From NCBI GenBank assembly GCA_009103225.1, contig RHPI01002990.1:576767-640766 (forward strand): 64,000 nt of DNA, given 5' to 3'. Within the stretch, counting starts at the first letter, position 1. Each line of letters starts with the position of its first letter. Position numbers and translations under genes: made by a program. The notes beneath the pieces were generated by a model. The model made no database searches. It had not been told where the DNA came from and saw only the letters and a list, made by a program, of their open reading frames with translations. This document shows, piece by piece, positions 1,923 to 19,692 of this stretch. The DNA is from Chlorokybus atmophyticus. Its lineage: Eukaryota > Plantae > Mesostigma and Chlorokybus algae.

Positions 1923-2222
1923 GTAATCTGCCTGCCACTTCTCTTCTTACAAGAGGGTGAGCAGAGAAGTTGCACACATGCACGTGCGTGACTTCCGGCA
2001 CACACTTCCTCTATGTGTGCCACAAACACGGTGCGTGCACGTGTGTGATAACTTGCCACTGGTAAGGTAGAACCCGCGCATCTGTTTGTAACTTCTAGTC
2101 TAGTCTTCATGCAGCAGCAAGTACATCGACTGCTCACCGAACAATGTCCCTGAGAAGAAAAACTCACGCGAACTAACACGTACCACCCACCTTCCAGCAG
2201 ACAATCTTCTCTACGTCAAGCC

Positions 2223-5200
2223 ATGAAGCACCTTGTCCTCCTCCTCCTTGTCCTCATCACACCCAACTCCGTCACGGCCTTTCCCCCCCAACTATCAGGC
2301 CGCGTGTTCTGCGACGCGTGCGCCACGGGCCTGGCGATGGGATCCTCGACGACAACAACAACAACAGCGACAGCAAATGCAAGCAACGAGAGGGCGCCTG
2401 GGATTGAGGGAGCGGTGGTGCTGGTGCGGTGCTTGGATGATACGGGTGAGCAAGGGAGGGGGTGTACATACATGTGTGACAGAGGGAGAGGGAAAGAGGG
2501 AGAGAGGGAAAGAGGGAAAGAGCTAGTGCTAGGGAGTGTGTGAGGGAGTGCTTGGATGAGTGAGTGAGTGTATGCGTGAGAGAATGGGTGAGTGGGTGGG
2601 TGGGTTAGTCATTGCCTGAAGCATTGGTAAGTGGTTGGGTGAGGGAGTGAGTGCGTGCATGGGAAAGAAAGGTAAGTGCGTGAGTGGGTGAGTGAAAGGG
2701 TTGGTGATTGAAAGATTGAAAGAGTGGTTGGATTAAAGAGTCGGGGAATGAGTGAGTGAGTGAGTGAGTGGGTGGGTGGGTGCAGCGAGCGAGTAGGAGG
2801 AGAGCGTGTATGTGCATGTCTGTGCAAGTGCACTTACACGCGCGCACACATTTGGTTCACACATTGAAAGATTGGGTTGATGGATGAGTGAAAGCGTGGG
2901 TGAGTGAGTCGGGAGGTGGTTGCAAAAGCAGTGAGTGATTGAGTGAGTGACTGCGTGCACGTAACTGGATTGTGCCGCGAACCGGCAGCACAAACAGACA
3001 ACCCGCATGCACGCACACGCACACGCACACACACTTGTCCCCTCTCCCATCTCCTTCAGGCCAGCTTCTCCTTCAGCGCTTCCCCCGCACCGACTCCTTT
3101 GGCTTCTGGTCCGCTACCGTCTTGTCCCAGGACCAGCTCTCTCCGTCTCGTCGCCTCGCCAACTGCACCGCACGCGCATACATCAGCAACACACCCACAT
3201 GCAGCCTCGCCAGCCCTTTACAATGCGGCCGCATAGCCACCGTTACACCCGACACGTTGTCACCGGGTGCCAACATAACTTTAACAGACTTGTGCTTCGC
3301 CAAAGCGGGGCCGGTTGGACAAGAGTGTGTTGGGGTCGAGTTGTATGGTGAAGTGGCGGTAACTGATGTGATCCAGTTTAAAACGGCTCTCGGGATGCTT
3401 AACCCACAAAGACCTCGGTTAGCACTCAGCCAAGTAAACCTGCCTTCACTGAGGGCCTATTGCGATGTCGCCGTGACCCGAGCCGGGATCGATATCGCCG
3501 CGATACAAGATGATATCTCTCTTGGGTCCGGTGGGCAACAGCAACAACCCAACATTGAAGCTGCCGTTGCTTGGATGTGTGCAAGCACGCTGGCTTCCGC
3601 TACCAACGCTGTAACAAAACCAAGAGTCCTGTCCGGTGATGCCATGGCGATATCAAGGGCGCTGCTCGATAGAGTTACTCTTGTCGCGGGGGCGTGGCTG
3701 GTCGACGGCGATATCGCCAAGAGGGACGCTGTCAAGGCGGATTTGGCTTATATCGCAGCCTTGCCTGCCACAAAGTGGAACGACAATGGTAACTTGGATT
3801 CCGGATATCTACCGGTAGCGCAGTTTCTGGAAGCGGCCAGCTTTGGGTTCGATTGGATGTATGGGGAGCTTACGACTGCTGAAAAAGATGCGGTCTGGCA
3901 GGTGAGTGGGATTGAGTTATGTCTGTTAGCGTGTGACTGAGCCTGAATGTGCGCATGTTACTGTGTCTGTGCGTGCACACGCCGTTGCGGGTGGTGCAAT
4001 ACAACGGGCACGTTCGTGTAATCACCAAGCCATGGACTCATTTAACAGGGCGTGAGAGACAAGGCCTTCATCCCCGCTCTGACCTACAACCCGTCGGGCG
4101 TCAACTTCAACGACTTCATCCTCGCGATGAACGCGGACGTCACGCGCACCCACGCGACGCTCAACAACCTAAACTACTTCCTCCAGCTCAAGAACAACAT
4201 CCGCACCAACGTAATGTCGGCGTACGTCATAGGCGCACTGGCGTTCGCGGAGTACAACATGACCATGGCGGACCAGGTGAGACGCTGGTTGTCTCAACGG
4301 TGGTATCATCGCTGCAAAGTCGTTATTGTCAACGCAATCTGAGTATACGTGTGTGAGTGCGTGCGTATGTGTGTGCGCGAGCTTGAATGCTTGTGCGTGC
4401 ACGTGCGCGTGGGGGGGGNNNNNNNNNNNNNNNNNNNNNNNNNNNNNNNNNNNNNNNNNNNNNNNNNNNNNNNNNNNNNNNNNNNNNNNNNNNNNNNNNN
4501 NNNNNNNNNNNNNNNNNNNNNNNNNNNNNNNNNNNNNNNNNNNNNNNNNNNNNNNNNNNNNNNNNNNNNNNNNNNNNNNNNNNNNNNNNNNNNNNNNNNN
4601 NNNNNNNNNNNNNNNNNNNNNNNNNNNNNNNNNNNNNNNNNNNNNNNNNNNNNNNNNNNNNNNNNNNNNNNNNNNNNNNNNNNNNNNNNNNNNNNNNNNN
4701 NNNNNNNNNNNNNNNNNNNNNNNNNNNNNNNNNNNNNNNNNNGCACATAGGAGAATACGTGTGCGCGTGCGTATGAGAGAGTGAGCGTGTGTGCATGCAT
4801 GACTGTGCGCCACGTGTACATGCATGCGTACGTGCGCTCACACATATGTCTCCACGCAGATCCTCCAGCTCGCCCTCCCCGGTCTCGCCTCCTCCGTCTC
4901 CCTCTTCTCCCCAACGGGCGCCTGGGCAGAGGGCGCGACGTACCTGTCGTACGTGGGGATGAGCCTGTCGTACGCGCTGGCGTCGCTCGAGGGCGCGCTG
5001 GGGACCGACTTCGGGATTGGACTCAGCCCGGCACTACGATCCGCAGCTTATTTCAGGTAGGAGAAACAAGTAAAGCAAGCAAGGTTGTGTAGATGCTGGA
5101 AACCACGAACGTTGAACGTGACACACACACACGCGCACGCGCACGCACGCACGCACGCACGCATGAGTAAGTCACTTGAAGACTAAGTGTTGACGGTCTT

Positions 5201-8200
5201 CAGAGGCAACAGCTAGTGCACTGCTCTTACCTGCAGTAACTAATCAAGGACCTTCAAGAGAATACAGAGTAGAGTAGAGAGTACAGCCAAAAGCAGTTGG
5301 TTGTCAACTTTGGGTGTGTGAGATATCAGACACCCAACTGACTGATCTGTTTCCCCCCCTTGCCCCAGGTTCCACATGGTGTCTCCCCTCTCCCAGTCCT
5401 TCAACTACGCGGACGCCTCCCCCTCCCTCCTCTCCGCGCAGCTGTCGTACTACCTCGCCCGGAGGCTGCGGGACCCGTACCTCGCGGTGACGGAGGCGGG
5501 GATGCTGCAGACGGGAGGGGCGTTCAGACTGCTGTGGTAGGGAGGGAGTGTGTACTTCTTGGCACCGCGTGTGTGTACGCACGCATGTGTTGCTTTGGCG
5601 CATATGTTTGGTGGACTTGTATGTATGTGTCTGTGCGTGCGTGCGTGCGTGCGTGTACTTCTCTGCGTGCGCGTATGTGAGTGCCACGCACGCACTATAT
5701 GACTCACACTTACACTCCCTCCAGGCTTGTGCCCGACATCTGGGAGGGTTCCCCCGGTCCCGCTCAGCCCTTAGACTCCCGCTTCACGGGTTACAACGCC
5801 GACATCGCCTTCATGAGGACAGACTGGTCCTCCTTCTCCTCCTCATCGCCATCATCGTCAACAGCCTATCTCGCTGTCAAGGGCGGAAGCAACCCTGCCA
5901 AGCCGGGAGGGCACCAGCACCTGGACCTTGGCTCCTTTGTGTTTGAGAGCATGGGACAGAGGTAGATTGAGGATGGTATTGTTGATGGTGATGACAACGG
6001 TGATGGTGATGGTGATGATAGTGTTGGGTGTGTGGTGAAGCTTGGTGTGTGACGACAGGTGGTTTGTGGACTTGGGCAATGAGAGCTACGCGGCTCCGGG
6101 TTACTTTGGTGCCAACAGGTAGGGTATGATGCTGTGAGGGTGTGGGTGTGGGTGGGTGCGCGTGCTTGCATGCATGCGTACGCACATATGTGCGCCTGCT
6201 TGGGTTGGTGGGTGCACGTCATTTGTCACAGGCGTGCGCACACACAAACACACGTACACAACACCAAGTACAACAAGCACTAAAAAACAAAAACCAAGGA
6301 CCAAACCTTGACAATACCGCACTCAACAATATTTCCATGGCACAGGTTCTCCTACTACCGCGCTCGTACCGAGTCCCACAACACCCTCTCCCTCTCCCCT
6401 TCCGCCTCTCCGCTCCTCCCCCTCCAGCTCCCTTCCCAATCCCTCTCCTCCTCTGCTCCAATCCTCGTCCTGCTCTCGACCCCAACGCGCTCCCACGCCG
6501 TACTGGACCTGACCCAAGCATGGACTAGTAGTGTATCAGGACTGAAGTCAGTCAGGAGAGGGACGGCTTTGTTGAAGGATGGGATGGGTAAAGGTGTGAG
6601 ACTCCTTGTCCAGGATGAGGTTGTGCCTGGGGGGAGTAGTAGTGCAGTCAATGCAGTTCAGATGTATCACACGTTGGCGAGTGTGGTTGTGTCTTCTGAT
6701 GGGAAGGTGGCTACTTTGAGCTTGGGGTTGGGTGTGTTGTATGGGAGGGTGTTGAGTCCTGCCGGGGCGGGGTTTGTTGTGTGGGGTGCGGACCCGAACG
6801 CAAGAGTGGACGCGAAGCTGCAGGAGTCGGCTAATGAGGGAGTTGTGAACCTTGTTGTGAGGCTGAGTAGCCCTGTAGCGGTGGCTACAACAATTGCGGT
6901 GGTGTGGGGACCGGACCGTACCCAAGACCCTCCACAGGCGGGTCACTATACCACACACATACACGCGTACACACACATACACAGACTGTTGCACTGACTG
7001 TCTAATACAAAACCAACGTACACATCTCTCAGGTTACTTCCCTCCAAGCCTGGTTGATCGAGGTCTGCGATGGTCTCGACAACGACGGTGACGGTCTCGT
7101 CGACAACGCCGTTGCCGGCAACCCCGCACCATTAACAATGTCCTGTGCGGCGGGGTGCCGGACGGGAGTGAGGACGTGCGTGGGGGGAAGCTTTGCAGAA
7201 TGCAGCGCTGTTGCTGGTGTGGAAGTGTAAGTGAAGAGTGTGTTGGGGAGTGATTTGGGGGGTGAGAAGGGGGAGGAGTGGGGTTGAGTATCTGAACTTG
7301 GTGTGTAGGTGTAATGGCGTTGATGATGACTGTGATGGAGTTGTTGATGACCCTCCAAGCAACGGCAACCCGCAGCTGAACTGCGCTGCAGGCTCCTTGT
7401 GCTTTCAGGTACGTATCACCTCATGGCAACCAACAAGTGCAACAACACTACGACACATATTGTCACATAGAACATGACAACGCTTTGCAGGGTGCGTGTG
7501 TCCCTGCAGCTGCAAGCAGCAGCTCCGCATCAGCCCCAATCGTCCCGCTCGGGTCCACATGGCAGTACCTACAGCTGACAAACAGCATCACCGACGCCTG
7601 GAAGTACCCAAAGTAAGTCTCTCACCACTCGTGTCGCTGTGGCATACACACACGCACAGACCGCTGTGTTCGCATGCGGGTGCGCGTGTGCGGGTGCCGC
7701 TGCCATCACACGTGTGTGCGTGTACGCGCCCATGTTCAAGTGTGCACTTAAGATGCGTGTTTGTGTACTCAATCAAAGTGTTGCCACCAAACAACACCTG
7801 TCTGTCACAGCTACGACGTCTCCCTTTGGTCCTCCGGCCCTTCTCCCCTCGGCACCTCTTCTTCCTCCTCTTACCCTCTCTCCACTCTCATCTCTCCCCA
7901 ATCCCTCTCTCTCACCAGCAACCAACTCAGCTCCACTTCCTACTTCACCCGCGACTTCATCATCCCAAAGAGCGCAGGGACCCTCGTCACATCACTCGAC
8001 CTGCAACTACTTGTGCAGATGGGAGCTGTGGTGTATATGAATGGAGTGGAGTTGTTGAGAGTTAATGTGCCGGATGTGAGTATTGGAGTGGATGACTCGG
8101 AGATACTCGCGGTCGTGTATAATAAAGCGCTCACGGCGTCACCGCTAACACTCGCAAACTTTACCATACCCGCCACGGCACTGATTGTAAGTGGCTGGCT

Positions 8201-9441
8201 ATGCTGGTTGAGTGGCAATTAACTGCTTTGTAAACCACTGATGCATCGTTGATGAGGGAGTCTCTTTTGTTCAGGTTGGTAGGAATAGGCTGGCTGTGGA
8301 GGTGCACAAGGACTCGCCCACTCGCAACCTTCTGATGGAAGCGAGTCTCAGCCTCACGAGCACTGCGTGGGCGTGTCCAATAGGGACAACATCATGCGTG
8401 CGAAGGTATGCATGCATGCTTGAACAAGCATTGCTTCAGTAATCAATTGCCTCTGCTGATATTCATGCATGTGTTTTCAGTACTGGTTTCTTGAGCGTGT
8501 TTAAGACGGGAGCCACATGGTCTTACTCCGATGCGTACGCGTGGGTCCCGAGCTCCGATTGGTATACCAGTAACTACAACGACTCCTTATGGTCAACAGG
8601 TCCATCCCCATTGGGTTTCTATGGCAAGGTGCCCATCTCATCACAAACAATTATCAACCACCCGCGCACGACTTACTTCCGGCGTTGGTTCACGCTACCC
8701 AACGCGGGGTGCTTCCACACGCTGTCTGCGCGCTTGCGTCTGCGTGATGGGTTCATATTGTATGTTAATGGGGTTGAAGCTATAAGATCAAATGTACCGG
8801 GAGGGTATGTGGACTCGAGCTCGGTAGCAACGGAAGTGCGGGACACAACTACCTTTAATGAGTACAGGCAAGTGTCATTAGTGTTGATGAGTTTGGTGTT
8901 TTACTGTCAGTGAGGGCTTGTGATGGGGAGACTGATTGTTAGCATGACGTGCACAGGTTTGCAGCAAGTTTGTTGACAAGAGGTGGAGTTGGCACGCGGC
9001 ACTTGATCGCCATTGAGGTGCATCAAGTGGCGAACATCAAACCACCTTTCAATGACTTTGATATGGAGCTTGGTGTCAGCGCCGATGCCACATGCTTGAG
9101 CAAGTACGTACGTGCTTTCTGCATGTGCGTGAGCGCATGTGTGCGTATTTGTCGCATGCACGCGTGTGCACAGACATGATATTACACTGGCTAGAATGTG
9201 TGCGCTTGTTTGCACGGCTACATGCGTGCGTGCACATATGCGGACATGTTGATGTGTGCGTGTAGTCCAGTTTATTGGCATGTGTTGTCAGCACAAGTCA
9301 GTACAAGCTGTTACAAGCAAGACATGTTGACTAACTATGTATATGCATGTAGGGTTGGCGGTGTTGCAGGGGGGCTACAAGTATTTAGCCCTTATTGAGG
9401 CCCTTGCCCAAAGTCATCGTTATGCACCATGTTGTACATAA
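2223..9441 (+). CDS. Multi-exon secreted mosaic protein: Ole e 1-like domain, heparinase II/III-like (alginate/oligo-lyase type) module, 2 MopE-like motifs, 2 bacterial-type beta-sandwich domains
   Basis: Phase-consistent exons 2223-2445, 3060-3901, 4049-4276, 4860-5056, 5369-5536, 5725-5961, 6059-6118, 6346-~6937, 7033-7226, 7309-7408 and further exons to about 9.4 kb. Signal peptide MKHLVLLLLVLIT; GRVFCDAC..IEGAVVLVRC..TDSFGFW..NCTA; FGFDWMY; GAWAEGATY; FNYAD; KGG..GHQHLDLGSF..GQRWFVDLG..Y..PGYF; ESHNTL; EVCDGLDNDGDGLVD and EVCNGVDDDCDGVVD; TWxY..W..YxxSLWSxGPSPLG..TxYFxRxF..GxxxYxNGVE twice. The last exon and stop codon are uncertain. Confidence 0.8.
4419..4742. other. Assembly gap (N run) inside an intron
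   Basis: 324 N preceded by a G8 run; the flanking exons (ending 4276, starting 4860) join in phase 0. Confidence 0.97.
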
Positions 9442-9534
9442 ACAAGCAAGTGTATAGATATTTATTGAGATTGATGCTGGATACAACTACTGTAGGAACC
9501 AAGTTGTCGTATTTGATGGCACAGGGTCGTATCT

Positions 9535-11834
9535 TTATCTAGACACGCACACCTCTATGTGAGTTGTGAATTTCATGTAGCTTGCAGCTTGCGCTAACAG
9601 GCGCAGACTCAGCGCAAGATCAGTCTTCAGCTTAACCAGAAACCTGTCGTCTGCGGATGGCGCCAGCAGCTTTGGACAAACGAATGTGATCACCTGGCCA
9701 TTGTGTGTCAATAGCATGTAACGGCACTCGCAAAGGTTCTCAAATGCACGCACTTACGCAATGCTCGCGCACACCGCACATGCACGCGCTCACCAGCAGA
9801 TCTCACCTGCAAAGGTCGAGGCCTGCTTGGACGGTCCTTGTCCTGGCTTTCGCACAGGTTGGCATGGGCGATTGCCCCCTGGACGTGGTCCTGTCCAAGG
9901 ATGGTGTACAAAACATTTTGAGCGAGCCTCTTGATGTGCTTGTGAAGATATTGTTTGAACACAGCGGGCAGACACACAGAGAATTGTCTTTGCCTCTCTG
10001 CGTGTGTGTAAATGATGCAGCATGCGTGCCCTTGCTTACACCTGCAATACACGAAGCATATGACTTTCGGTTGGCTGTCGGTGTGTTGAGGGAGCTTCAC
10101 TGACAGAGTGTATGCACCTGCGGGAGAAGTTGAGTAGATTATCAAGTACTTGCCCTTGTTGGAAGGCAGGTTGGTGACTGTGGTGGGGATGCGCACAGTT
10201 CGCGTACCATGCCGAGTCAGCTGTGTATGCACATGCGTGCATTTGTGCGTGCGTGATTGTGCAATGGTGTGTATGTGTGTGTGTGTGTGTGGCCGGGAGG
10301 GGCATAAGCAGTTATGCCAATACTGACACATACACATGAGCACACGTGCGTGCATGTGCATGATTGTGTGTGCACTTGTGCCATGGGGACACCACCAAGT
10401 GCAAACCCATACACGCGCGTGCATTGGAATATGTTAACGTCGCAATGCGCCTACTTACTACACTACAAACAACAATGCTACCATGGTTGCACAATCCCTA
10501 ACAAACTCTACAGCCACTACCAATCACTATCAGTCACTGCACAAACTAAAAGATCTGTCAGCCACACCTCAATCTCCTCACAGCCTCACAAGTACGTACT
10601 AGTGATATGCTGTGTTTTTGGCGTCATTGCAGGCATCATCACCATAGAACCTGCTACACTTTGGAGCGCTTTGTGCTGCAGCATCAAGGCTGTGAGGCGC
10701 TCCAAAGTCTGGCGGGTTCTATGTTGTTGATGCCTGTAATGACACCAGCAGAAGCACAGCAACCACTGCGCGTGTATTCCACACAAGTATTTGTAAGCAT
10801 GCAGCTATGGTGACGACCATTGCACGTCTTTGCGTCGATTCAATGGCATTTAAGTGTAACAACAGGACGCACGACCTGCAACCAAGGCCACACCAACAAA
10901 CATACGAGCAGAACAATTGACACATTCAACCACCCATGTCAGCATGATAGTACCACGCACCTTACGTTCCCGGCGGAACGTGACATCCATGACGACAACA
11001 TCCCTAGCTGTGGCGTCCAGCACAGCTTTGGTGCTTCGGTAACCAAAGGACTCCAGGCCACTTTTCAGGCCACGTTCCATACCTGACCCAATGCGCCAAA
11101 GCCCCCCNNNNNNNNNNNNNNNNNNNNNNNNNNNNNNNNNNNNNNNNNNNNNNNNNNNNNNNNNNNNNNNNNNNNNNNNNNNNNNNNNNNNNNNNNNNNN
11201 NNNNNNNNNNNNNNNNNNNNNNNNNNNNNNNNNNNNNNNNNNNNNNNNNNNNNNNNNNNNNNNNNNNNNNNNNNNNNNNNNNNNNNNNNNNNNNNNNNNN
11301 NNNNNNNNNNNNNNNNNNNNNNNNNNNNNNNNNNNNNNNNNNNNNNNNNNNNNNNNNNNNNNNNNNNNNNNNNNNNNNNNNNNNNNNNNNNNNNNNNNNN
11401 NNNNNNNNNNNNNNNNNNNNNNNNNNNNNNNNNNNNNNNNNNNNNNNNNNNNNNNNNNNNNNNNNNNNNNNNNNNNNNNNNNNNNNNNNNNNNNNNNNNN
11501 NNNNNNNNNNNNNNNNNNNNNNNNNNNNNNNNNNNNNNNNNNNNNNNNNNNNNNNNNNNNNNNNNNNNNNNNNNNNNNNNCCCCCAATCCCAAATGCCAG
11601 CACGGCCATACCTGCCACGAACCGCAGCGACCCAATCGACTCTGGATTGTTGCTCTGCTTCCGCAACCCTCTAAACTGCTGTGCAGCAACCCCAGGTGTG
11701 CCGCCGCCGTCGTCGCTGTTGCCGCCGCTGCTACTGCTGCCAGCAGCCTGCACATGGCTGCGGGCGGAAAGAGCCCTGCGCCGGTTTAACGGTCGCTCAG
11801 CGCTACTGTCACTGTGGTGGTGGCGTGGCATCAT
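9535..11834 (-). CDS. Tentative uncharacterised multi-exon gene, head-to-head with ADA1
   Basis: Phase-compatible exon candidates: ~11834-11614 (MMPRHHHSDSS..SLRFVA), ~11084-10963 (GMERGLKSGLESFGYRSTKAVLDATARDVVVMDVTFRRERK), ~10220-10121 (LTRHGTRTVRIP..KGKYLIIYSTSPA), ~9991-9807 (ERQRQFSVCLPAVFKQYLHKHIKRLAQNVLYTILGQD..RPRPLQ), 9693-9553 (VITFVCPKLL..KFTTHIE). No family recognised; one intron contains an N gap. Confidence 0.42.
10601..10767 (+). ncRNA. Long imperfect fold-back; candidate pre-miRNA/hairpin RNA (or tiny fold-back element)
   Basis: 10620-10669 is the reverse complement of 10697-10746 with 7 mismatches in 50 nt, 3 of them G:U pairs on the + strand; pairing extends outward (GCTGTG/CACAGC, AGTG/CACT) and into the loop. 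Confidence 0.45.
11108..11580. other. Assembly gap (N run)
   Basis: 473 N flanked by C runs on both sides. Confidence 0.97.
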
Positions 11835-15001: not shown

Positions 15002-15455
15002 CTGTACGTGCACGCGGGGCGGGGTTCTTGTGTTTCTTATATTGTATGCATAAGCGTTGTGTAAAGGATAGAGTCATAGCACGGTGAGAGTATACGTCTT
15101 GAGGACATGAGTTGCTGCACCAGATGCAGTAAGGTTGTTGTAACGTCAATGCGTGCTGCATGTCGTGTAAACATGTAGGAGCAAATGTCAGCTCAACGCG
15201 TCTTCTTTTTCAAGCGCTTTACGTGCTTCAACCCAACAACACGCCTGCCAGTGGTCACAATCACGAAAACGACGTATAACAACATTCATCAAATGTTACA
15301 AGCAATCTGCAAAGACCACATGGCCATGGGGACAGTCACCAATTTGAGATGAAGTCTGGTAAAACTTGTAGACCATAGCATGTCACAAGCCAACCAGCAT
15401 ATCGCGCTGAGTCACATGCCCATGCAGTAATCAGTTGTGAAATGTGATTTGTCAA

Positions 15456-15699
<244 letters not shown>

Positions 15700-16118
15700 N
15701 ACATCCCACATGCACGTCCTGACATTGGCTAAATACCTGCATCTACAACACTTGGACAGACCATACCTCTACTTCGCCCTATGCGTGTAGCATAGCACCG
15801 TGCTCTTAGCTGCTAATAGCAGTGCTATCATATATATACCACCATGCTTAGCCACGCACGCCGTAGTTCGCAGTGAAGTTCTCATACGTAGCACACTGGA
15901 CTCGAGAACCTTCTGGGAAATCCGCTGCTGCCCTGGTGCGGCGATCTGCTGCCACATTGCAGTGCGCGAAACCGCGTTTTAGGGTTGGGGCCAAAGCAAA
16001 CCTCGCAAGCAACGAAGTCAAGAAGAGCGACCGTTTGTTGGCGGCGGCGGCGGTGGCGGCAAGGCAGGAGGAAGGAGTGGAGGAGCCGCAGATTAGGGTC
16101 GCTGGCCTTGACGACGTC

Positions 16119-19100
16119 ATGGCTGACGAGCACAAAGCCAAGGGCAACGCCGCCTTCAGCGCCGGCAAGTACGACGAGGCCGTGGAGCACTTCACCAAGG
16201 GCATAGAGGTTAGGCTGTGTTGCATTCCCTTACCATCACCAAGGATGCCCCATTGGGCATGCATGATGAGGGTTAGGATCTGACATTAGTTTCACTCTGC
16301 CTGACTGTTGGCTTGCCATAACTGCACTTGACAATCTCTCCAGACAGCAGCAAGCATCGATGGTGTGCCATGCCACGATTGAGTTGCACAGGTTGTTTTC
16401 ATTTCTTCCTTCTGTTGAGCAATGCATGTACGCGTCATAATTCAGGCATTGTCTGAGCCTCAGCATGCGTATAAAAACACTTGCAGCGGGATGCCTAAAC
16501 TATGCATTGCAAGTGTTGAGTCAGGTAGGCTTGGCGACAGCTTGCAGTATGCGCATGACCGCACTCGCAACCTCTTGTCCATTAGCTAATCAGCAGTGAT
16601 TGAAGTAAATTACAGCAAAGCTTGCATGCATTGTGCGCAGACAACGAGGTGGAACCGCTCAGCCATCTTCCATCTTGCACAGTAGCATGCAAGCTGGTAG
16701 TATCATGAGCGCATGTTCTTGAGCTTCGGCATTATTCTGGCCCTGATCAGGCTTTCTTTTGATATTTACTTCAGCAGCAGACCAAATTGTTCTTTCCATT
16801 CTACAGGTTGATCCCACAAACCATGTGCTGTACAGCAATCGCTCCGCTGCCAACGCCTCACTGAAGCGCTTCTCTGAAGCTTTCGATGATGCCAATAAGA
16901 CGGTACGTACATAACGCAATGTGCATAGTATAATTGTTGCATCCTTGTTGCGTGCTAGTTTCCTATTGACATGCATGCGTGTGTATGCTTATTACCTCAG
17001 ACCGAACTCAAGCCGGACTGGTCCAAAGGTTACAATAGAAAGGGGGCCGCTCTCTATGGGCTCGGACGGCTCGATGAAGCAATCGAAGCTTACCAGAAAG
17101 GCTTGGAGATTGAGCCCTCGAGCGCACCACTCAAACAGGCTCTTGAAGAGGTTCGTGCCTGTGCTGTCCAACACATGTGCACTTATGCGCGCGCGCGCGC
17201 ACACACGCACATTGTTCGTCTCAATAGTCGTGTTGTCATTGCAGGTTCAAGCGGCCAAAGGTTCTGCTGAAGGCGGCCCCGGGCACAGTCTTGGTGCGAT
17301 GTTCAGCGGGCCCGACGTGTGGGCAAAGATTGCACAGAGCCCTCAGACAAGGGCTTACCTTGCACAGCCAGACTTTGTTGCCAAGCTGCAGGTGCAACAC
17401 ATTGTTGTTGCAAATGTTTCAGCACCTTTGTGGAGATGTTGTGTAGCTCATGCGCGTGCATCTTATCCAGGAGGTGCAAAGGAATCCCAACAGCCTCAAT
17501 AAACACCTGAACGATCCCCGCATGCTGCAAGTGCTCGGCGTTGTCATGGGCATCAACATACAGACAGCTGCACCGGGTGACGACATCAAGTTCCCAGAGG
17601 CAGAGGAGGTGTGCATTGTGTGTGGCGCTTTTACTCCTTGCGTGTACTTCTATCTGATGTAGCAGTATATACAACATGTTGACATGTCGTTTGCAATCAG
17701 CAGGCTGAGCCACCAGCAGTAGCGTCCTCGACAGACAGCGCGAAGCCAATGGAAGAAGACAGGCCGTCGTCTGCGAAGGCTGCACCTGAGCCGGAGGTAG
17801 AGACGGGAGGTGAAGAGAAGGAAGAGCTGGAGCGCAAGAAAGCAGCCAAGGTATTGTTGGTTACATTGCATGCAATGTGCATGGCTGAGAAACCTCCAGC
17901 GTGCTTGTTGTCCACACACTCTGCATGCATAATGCCTACAGAGTGTGTGCACACGCTTGTGCATGGGCACATTGCGATGTATGTTGTGGTGAGAATATGA
18001 ATACTCTCACCGCAATATGTTGCGATTCAACGAGCTGAGGTCATTCCTGCATTATCCCAGGCGGAGGCGCAGAAGGAGAAAGAGCTGGGGACAGCAGCGT
18101 ACAAGAAGAAAGACTTTGATGCGGCCGCGCAGCATTACACGAGGGCCTTTGAGCTGGATGATACGGACGTCACTCACCTCACCAACCGCGCAGCAGTTAA
18201 CTTGGAATCTGGAAAGGTATGCCGTTGTGAGCTCTTGTGTCGTCGCTTTCTGTTGCCATGCAGACAATGGAAATGCACTCATCTACTCCTCTGTCAAGCA
18301 TAGGTCCATGCAACATGTTTGCAGCGGGTTGCATGTGGTAGCTTTTGCTAGTTTCCATATCACACTTGGGAGTTGGGTGGATTGGAACCGAAACTTTTTG
18401 CACCTTCTTTGCGTACAGTTTGATAAGTGCATAGCCGATTGTGACAAAGCCGTTGAGCGCGCTCGCGAGCTACGAGGCGATTACTCGCTGATCGCTAAGG
18501 CCCTTACACGGAAAGGCAATGCATACCTAAAGAAGGCAAATAAGGTAATGGCGATAGCGTACACGCGTTCTGTACAGTCAACGCCAGGCATGTAAATACA
18601 TGCTGACGACATTACCAGGCTGAAGACTACAAACCGGCTATTGAAGCATACCAAAAAGCATTGACGGAGCATCGCAACCCCGACACGTTGAAGCGGTTGA
18701 ACGAGGCTGAGAAGAAGATGAAAGACCTCGAAGGGCAGGAGTACCTCAACCCGGAGCTGGCACAGCAAGAAAGAGAGAAAGGTGAGTGCTGGCTTGGCTA
18801 CATGCAATGCAAGTTTCCTCTCCTGCATGTGGTTGGAAGCAAAAATCAAGACAATCCAACTGATTGGCTTGTTTACATGTGTTGCAGGCAATGAGCTGTT
18901 CAAGGATGGGAAGTTTGCTGATGCAGTGAAAGCATACACGGAGGCGTTGCGAAGAGACCCAACAGACTACAGGGTGTACTCGAACCGAGCAGCGTGCTAC
19001 ACAAAGCTCATGTCGTTGAACGATGGGTTGAAGGATGCAGAGAAGTGCATCGAGCTTGCCCCCGATTTCGTGAAAGGGTACTCGCGGAAGGGCCACATTC

Positions 19101-19692
19101 AATTCTTTATGAAGGACTACGAGAAGGCGCTCGAGACATATCAAGTATGTGTATCTGTGCAGGCCCTGAAATCGAAGTAGAGGTGTGTCCTGATGACGCA
19201 ACCAACACAACCATCTGTCTCTGTTTTCATAGGCTGGGTTGAAGCATGATCCCAATAATGAGGAGTTGAAAGATGGCGTGGCGAGGAGTATGGACGCGTT
19301 GCGGCGATTTGCCTCTGGCCAGGGTTTGTCCGATCAGGAGCTCAAAGAACGACAAGCCAAGGCGCTGCAAGACCCGGAGGTCCAGGGCATTCTTTCAGAT
19401 CCTGTCATGCGACAGGTGCGCAAGAGTTAACTGCAGTTGCACTGAGCACACCATAACATCAACTAGTTGATGTGTACGTACCTGTGCGCATGAGCATGCG
19501 AGTGTGCGCGCGTGTGTGTGCGTCGGTGGCACATTCGCTCTGTTAGAGTTGTGCTGATCACGCAGCTTGTTCTTGCAGGTGCTCAACGATTTCGAGTCAG
19601 ATCCAAGAGCTGCACAGCATCATCTGCAGAACGCTGTCATTCGCACAAGGTTACAAAAGCTCATAAACGCTGGCATCATCCGAGTGGCGTAG
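16119..19692 (+). CDS. HOP: Hsp70-Hsp90 organising protein (STI1/HOP), TPR1-DP1-TPR2A-TPR2B-DP2, multi-exon
   Basis: MADEHKAKGNAAFSAGKYDEAVEHFT; VDPTNHVLYSNRSAA; ELKPDWSKGYNRKGAA; DPRMLQVLGV; EHRNPDTLKRLNEAEK; GNELFKDGKFADAVKAYTEALRRDP; ALQDPEVQGILSDPVMRQ|VLNDF..KLINAGII*. All joins are GT-AG. Confidence 0.97.

Follow-up and report, generated by a model that had tools for sequence, protein, structure and literature searches.

In this work we describe a predicted nuclear gene of the alga Chlorokybus atmophyticus, located in a 64,000-nucleotide stretch of contig RHPI01002990.1 (assembly GCA_009103225.1, positions 576,767 to 640,766 of the forward strand; hereafter the window, whose own numbering is used throughout). 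We consider it likely that this gene is intact and encodes a secreted extracellular-matrix enzyme of several modules, with a core resembling polysaccharide lyase (PL) family PL35, that it is one member of a family numbering at least eight genes, and that its lyase part is of bacterial descent. As read from the sequence, the modules run in the order signal peptide, Ole e 1-like Cys-rich domain, PL35-like toroid plus beta-sandwich, two MopE-like motifs and two jelly rolls. A preliminary description of the same DNA had proposed an intron-rich mosaic gene joining a plant Ole e 1-like domain to a heparinase II/III-like lyase, MopE motifs and two C-terminal domains of bacterial type. The window sequence was searched and folded one exon at a time, and statements on the whole protein come from database paralogs.

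PL35 and its relatives have been known as enzymes with which bacteria degrade animal glycosaminoglycans (GAGs) or alginate. Judged by its sequence matches, the lyase core is nearest to this CAZy family and not to PL15, PL17 or PL21, to which it was first likened; its assignment as a heparinase II/III-like lyase stands. Exons 2, 4 and 6 each found PL35 chains as their best matches among sequences of the PDB, in collinear order (E = 0.077, 0.0021 and 0.059, respectively). Residues 197-275 of exon 2 paired with residues 70-141 of the 8khv chain, residues 12-64 of exon 4 with chain residues 208-261 (E = 0.0021 for 8khw and 0.042 for 8khv), and residues 25-77 of exon 6 with residues 351-393 of 8khv, a chain whose HAHMD motif holds His401, His403 and Asp405; exon 8 alone returned no lyase in the same search. 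The Chlorokybus paralog P0001 matched PL35 chains only among PDB sequences (1.8e-28), and a profile built from 26 family members (A1) matched 8khv over its full length at 9e-166, compared with 1e-41 for PL15 and weaker matches to PL21, PL39 and PL17. In addition, the Chlorokybus relatives of exon 2 carry the Hepar_II_III_C domain. Set beside the PL35 enzymes GAGase II (8KHV), GAGase VII (8KHW) and the Bacteroides chondroitinase (9O3Q), the whole catalytic core is collinear, with the same triad and the same His/Asp/Asp/His site. Unlike the characterized PL35 enzymes, however, the window gene is eukaryotic and intron-rich, carries extra N- and C-terminal modules, and lies on a long separate branch at about 25-30% identity. 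As a separate observation within this group of lyases, one bacterial protein (P0018, 1209 residues) holds two PL35-like lyases in tandem in a single chain; Hepar_II_III_C occurs twice along it, and its tblastn matches to the window exons likewise fall into two sets.

In GAGase II the catalytic triad consists of Asn192, Tyr246 and His401, and the surroundings of the Mn2+ ion are formed by His403, Asp405, Asp421 and His457, each of which is required for activity (PMC12088678; numbering of the 8khv chain is that of this paper minus 22). In alignments with homologs and PL35 chains, all seven of these functional residues are kept in the window exons, and the motifs of the preliminary description (EGATY, HQHLD and HNT) are indeed present, as are KNN and WFVDLG. 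The Tyr of EGATY (exon 4) aligns directly to chain residue Y224, equivalent to Tyr246, and the catalytic His was assigned by direct alignment of HQHLD in exon 6; the Asn-Asn pair of KNNIRT in exon 3 was assigned by multiple alignment only, in a column that is invariant in A1. For the metal site, HQHLD, WFVDLG and SHNT (exons 6, 7 and 8) align with His403/Asp405, Asp421 and His457. The Asn-Asn neutralizer is that of GAGase II, in contrast to the His-Asn of the alginate-active GAGase III, and the residue following the neutralizer Asn is Ile in the window gene versus Trp in bacterial sequences. By analogy with PL35 enzymology, the core would cleave a 4-linked uronic-acid polysaccharide by beta-elimination. 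In such a reaction the carboxylate would be neutralized by the Asn-Asn pair, and the roles of base and acid would fall to the leading His of HQHLD and to the EGATY Tyr; a metal, which in PL35 is Mn2+, would be held by the second His and the Asp of HQHLD together with the WFVDLG Asp and the HNT His. Tethering the enzyme to glycans of the wall or sheath, or targeting it at them, is the probable role of the Ole e 1 domain and the jelly rolls.

The same fold could in principle serve a uronyl C5-epimerase, comparable to dermatan-sulfate epimerase, or a non-catalytic glycan-binding protein, an alternative to lyase function that we regard as unlikely. It draws on a match of profile A1 to dermatan-sulfate epimerase 6hzn (5e-7), on the long branch and about 25-30% identity separating the algal clade from characterized PL35 enzymes, and on the replacement of the bacterial Trp after the neutralizer Asn by Ile or Val in the algal clade. 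However, seven out of seven residues shown by PL35 mutagenesis to matter are retained, and the PL35 matches exceed the epimerase match by far.

The gene model was built by reading the three forward frames of window positions 2100-9500, and predicts from genomic DNA a gene at 2223-9398 (+) with 16 exons, 1349 codons and a coding sequence of 4050 nucleotides. Its intron-rich, mosaic nature was borne out: all 16 exons are open with no internal stop, and phases agree at 15 of 15 junctions, each split codon being correctly completed. The start proposed in the preliminary description (ATG at 2223) holds, but its end at 9441 does not, as this is the stop of another frame that is unreachable with the phases found; the predicted stop is instead the TGA at 9396-9398. 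Thirteen of the 15 introns are of GT-AG type, intron 14 has a GC donor (GCAAGT at 8868), and the intron between exons 8 and 9 is ambiguous, as exon 9 may begin at 7033, paired with a GC donor at 6938, or at 7049, paired with a GT donor at 6942. Least certain is the small last exon, for which phase is the only support. Intron 1 (2446-3059) consists mostly of GTGAGTGAGTG-like G-rich repeats (GC skew of +0.6 in the bin 2501-3000), which offer many decoy donor sites there. An assembly gap is contained within intron 3 (4277-4859; GT donor at 4277, AG acceptor at 4858-4859). Across the flanking junction, exon 3 ends with a codon that aligns to P0001 residue Q362, exon 4 opens with the one aligned to I363, and P0002 (330/330), P0003 (227/226) and P0005 are equally contiguous. 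Since all four homologs align over this junction without loss of a residue, the coding sequence is continuous and in frame, and the gap bears on the length of intron 3 only; by these alignments, no coding sequence is lost to the gap.

It is about equally improbable that the window locus is a silent or decaying paralog, either a pseudogene of recent date or a copy without any expression. The gene is absent from the protein libraries searched, no RNA run is listed for the window stretch, and the introns hold an assembly gap and repeats, all of which speaks for such a locus. These points are countered by 1349 open codons distributed over 16 exons, by phases that agree and splice signals of standard type, by catalytic and metal-binding residues that are all intact, and by the retention of the jelly-roll core residues.

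Relatives of the window gene form an expanded family in Chlorokybus. A word-index protein search with exon 2 gave no match, because the relatives exceed its length window; an exhaustive protein search with the same exon returned 20 proteins at E values up to 0.001, none better than 1e-9, the best being five C. atmophyticus proteins (EukProt/JGI Chlat1). At least seven Chlorokybus relatives were identified (P0001, P0002, P0003, P0005, P0006, P0023 and P0024). These seven database paralogs form a single clade with support of 100, an exon tree places window exon 8 within the Chlorokybus clade with support of 99, and the window gene shares 30-50% identity with each of the seven. The complete architecture is found in P0001, Ole e 1 plus lyase in P0002, and the lyase alone in the other paralogs. 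P0001 corresponds to the public Chlorokybus model Chrsp6S07482 (1225 residues), in which the modules follow one another in identical order, starting with the signal peptide and running to the C-terminus, at 24-51% identity exon by exon; it is nevertheless a distinct paralog, with one MopE-like motif as opposed to two in the window gene and without the Thr-rich insert. On this comparison, the mosaic architecture is not unique to the window gene. The claim that no described protein has this architecture needs to be qualified: we found no paper on this family, but the public model has the same layout. Literature searches also found no link between Chlorokybus or streptophytes and heparinase-type lyases, nor between Ole e 1 and such an enzyme.

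The N-terminal module was correctly recognized at the outset as Ole e 1-like. Members of the Ole e 1 family share a conserved Cys framework that opens with G-x-V-[YF]-C-D-x-C. In the window gene a typical signal peptide is followed by GRVFCDAC, a Thr-rich insert with an N-glycosylation sequon, a phase-1 intron, and then GQLLLQRFPRTDSFGFWSA and further Cys residues, so that the framework is present, opened by the GRVFCDAC of exon 1 and continued by more Cys at the aligned positions of exon 2. On exon 2 alone, Pollen_Ole_e_1 (PF01190, gathering threshold 23 bits) scored 12.8 bits (E = 0.16) over the second half of the model, representing a half-domain only, whereas the aligned N-termini of P0001 and P0002 scored 28.7 and 27.4 bits, above threshold; the window exons, scanned singly, differ from their paralogs in remaining below it. 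Searched against PDB sequences, the Ole e 1 region of P0001 gave nothing meaningful. Compared with plant Pollen Ole e 1 and PAC-domain proteins, the module has in common the G-x-V-x-C-D-x-C start, the Cys pattern, the domain length and secretion; it differs in being an N-terminal appendage of an enzyme and in being split by a 20-residue Thr-rich insert. Exon 2 alone spans the passage from the Ole e 1 domain into the toroid, so this fusion is independent of splicing.

Two MopE-like motifs follow the lyase core, and a degenerate DNA pattern found exactly these two copies in the 64 kb of the window, where none would be expected by chance. Scores for PF11617 (Cu-binding_MopE, gathering threshold 27 bits) were 16.7 bits for exon 9 (E = 0.0086) and 15.0 bits for exon 10 (E = 0.03), and the NCBIfam model acid_disulf_rpt also matched exon 9 below its threshold (E = 0.0024). 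The two motifs first reported are real, but since both fall short of the PF11617 threshold we term them MopE-like and do not count them as members of the family.

The two C-terminal domains, with the pattern W..W..GPSPLG..YF.R.F..Y.NG, were likewise found as first described, in exons 11-13 and 14-15, and their bacterial character was upheld. No Pfam model matches these repeats. With the C-terminal part of P0001 as query, a region search recovered 88 copies in 48 bacterial multidomain proteins, many from Verrucomicrobiota, in the context of CotH/LTD, PKD/Ig-like and metallophosphoesterase proteins, and outside Chlorokybus the module was found in bacterial proteins only. In the Atlas, exon 14 lies beside bacterial clusters named GH2 sugar-binding domain (score 0.94), and a profile of the jelly rolls (A2) matched the Streptomyces rhamnosidase 3w5m at 5e-9. 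An AlphaFold model of P0001 residues 836-1022, a domain 41% identical to window exon 12, was confident (pLDDT, predicted local distance difference test, 89.8) and matched the N-terminal jelly roll of GH2 enzymes (Foldseek 2.5e-6; VIA Z 12.3 over 141 aligned residues). The conserved core residues of the jelly roll are kept in the window gene in alignment A2. Judged from the modeled paralog domain, the repeats are galactose-binding-like jelly rolls of the GH2-N/CBM67 kind, the same fold as the GH2 N-terminal sugar-binding domain and the beta-sandwich domains of the GH78 enzyme SaRha78A (3W5M), one of which is CBM67. Unlike in the window gene, the bacterial copies are not adjacent to lyases. Within the second jelly roll of P0001 (about residues 1108-1125), some 11 extra residues (SFPLLSLCECF...) interrupt the conserved D-G-x-V-V-Y-L-N-G strand; they occur neither in the window gene (8740-8760) nor in any bacterial copy, and probably represent a piece of intron retained in that gene model.

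With regard to evolutionary origin, no eukaryote other than Chlorokybus appeared among the matches of the exhaustive search with exon 2 or of a word search with P0003. The remaining relatives are bacterial or metagenomic, about 25-31% identical, and come from Planctomycetota, Verrucomicrobiota, Acidobacteriota, Armatimonadota, Chloroflexota, Myxococcota, Bacteroidota and other phyla. When 44 named bacterial loci were included in an unrooted tree, support of 100 was obtained both for the algal clade and for the bacterial sequences as a set, a long branch lay between the two, and no donor phylum was resolved. The occurrence in one eukaryotic genus, as opposed to many bacterial phyla, favors an old transfer into the Chlorokybus line, and an old bacterial origin of the lyase part is likely on these comparisons. 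Hence the horizontal acquisition proposed earlier is supported by the restriction of the eukaryotic matches to Chlorokybus, but neither a donor nor a nesting within bacteria accompanies it, the algal sequences having a long branch of their own. The account that needs fewest assumptions is a bacterial origin with later gain of introns: the lyase part would have entered once from bacteria, long ago, and would then have acquired introns, duplicated and become fused to a plant-type domain.

Several results weigh against the overall reading of a secreted PL35-like enzyme of bacterial descent. Pfam and NCBIfam scans of single exons gave nothing above threshold, which we attribute to the splitting of the conserved lyase region over seven exons; exon 3, searched alone, had no direct match to a PL35 chain among PDB sequences, and exon 1 alone had no match to PF01190 in a Pfam scan. 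Exon 14 folded alone was confident (pLDDT 87.9) but without a significant fold match, because its last strands lie in exon 15. Among 1.84 billion representative proteins, none reached 50% identity to exon 2, for which reason we regard the window gene as an eighth paralog missing from the public gene set. Exon junctions and expression are predictions from genomic DNA, and lyase activity, substrate and metal are deduced from conserved residues. Finally, the algal clade is nested in no bacterial group of the unrooted tree. This last position, outside every bacterial group and beyond a long intervening branch, would also suit an old eukaryotic gene that was inherited vertically and lost almost everywhere else, with no bacterial acquisition, as would the mutual identity of the paralogs of only about 40%, which marks the family as old. 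We judge this scenario slightly less probable still than the two alternatives above: no further eukaryote emerged from the exhaustive exon 2 search or the P0003 word search, bacterial members are numerous across many phyla, and the jelly-roll module is likewise restricted to bacteria in our search. Bacterial contamination is ruled out by the 15 spliceosomal introns and by a neighboring intron-containing tetratricopeptide repeat (TPR) gene downstream. Import of the lyase, MopE motifs and jelly rolls as a single bacterial block was also considered; the MopE-like motif was sought in the bacterial lyase and jelly-roll proteins and not found, and as we found no bacterial protein joining the three modules, such an import is unsupported.

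The features of the predicted gene are collected in Table 1. Elsewhere in the window, long (CA)n and (GA)n microsatellites occur at 1852-1917, about 300 bp upstream of the start codon, and at 15440-15700, and a second assembly gap of roughly 470 N lies at about 11090-11560. The TPR gene is a multi-exon gene at 15873-19180 (+) with several TPR_1/TPR_2 repeats (Pfam E values down to 1e-19), and by eye it looks like a co-chaperone of the Hop/STI1 type.

Table 1. Predicted exons and associated features of the PL35-like gene, in window coordinates.
Feature	Position	Strand	Content	Basis
Exon 1	2223-2445	+	Start codon; signal peptide (about 2223-2279); N-terminal half of Ole e 1-like domain; GRVFCDAC; Thr-rich insert	GRVFCDAC motif aligned to P0001 residues 30-38 and P0002 residues 8-19
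Exon 2	3060-3901	+	C-terminal half of Ole e 1-like domain; Cys-rich linker; first (alpha/alpha) toroid helices	Ole_e_1 E 0.16 on residues 9-53; 8khv, 8khw and 9o3q top on residues 180-278; tblastn with P0001 64-379
Exon 3	4049-4276	+	Toroid helices; KNN 4190-4198, with Asn-Asn 4193-4198 at the position of the PL35 neutralizer Asn191/Asn192	
Assembly gap	4419-4742		Within intron 3	
Exon 4	4860-5056	+	Toroid; EGATY 4929-4943, predicted catalytic Tyr 4941-4943	
Exon 5	5369-5536	+	End of toroid	tblastn with P0002 residues 398-454, P0003, P0005
Exon 6	5725-5961	+	Start of beta-sandwich; HQHLD 5912-5926, putative catalytic His and two metal ligands	Alignment
Exon 7	6059-6118	+	WFVDLG 6060-6077; Asp 6069-6071, putative metal ligand equivalent to Asp421	Alignment
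Exon 8	6346-6941 (end 6937 or 6941)	+	Rest of beta-sandwich; HNT 6377-6385, putative ligand equivalent to His457	Alignment; tblastn with P0001, 8e-25
Exon 9	7033-7226	+	First MopE-like acidic Cys motif 7066-7104, then Cys-rich stretch	
Exon 10	7309-7408	+	Second MopE-like motif 7310-7348	
Exons 11-13	7491-7612, 7811-8186, 8275-8405	+	First jelly roll	tblastn with P0001 residues 866-977, 41% identity
Exons 14-15	8481-8867, 8957-9103	+	Second jelly roll	tblastn with P0001 residues 986-1213
Exon 16	9353-9398	+	Short C-terminal tail; TGA stop	No similarity to P0001 tail

A review of the green-algal matrix lists no pectin lyases for Chlorokybus, and the composition of its sheath is poorly known (PMC10762512). 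A bolder scenario, which we put forward as no better than tentative, is that Chlorokybus holds the first eukaryotic PL35-type family, an old bacterial acquisition now numbering at least eight genes and fused to an Ole e 1/PAC domain, which remodels, in the sheath of the alga itself, a glucuronate-rich, GAG-like or glucuronan-like polymer, for instance during the release of daughter cells or zoospores. If this is true, the earliest-branching streptophytes would be expected to contain a matrix polymer not yet described. The window gene also flags a gap in public annotation. Its family is expanded and intron-bearing, includes members joined to a plant wall-protein domain, and occurs in the streptophyte alga farthest removed from land plants. 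If confirmed, the family would offer a clear case of a bacterial enzyme domesticated into the extracellular matrix of the plant lineage, as well as a handle on the chemistry of the Chlorokybus sheath.

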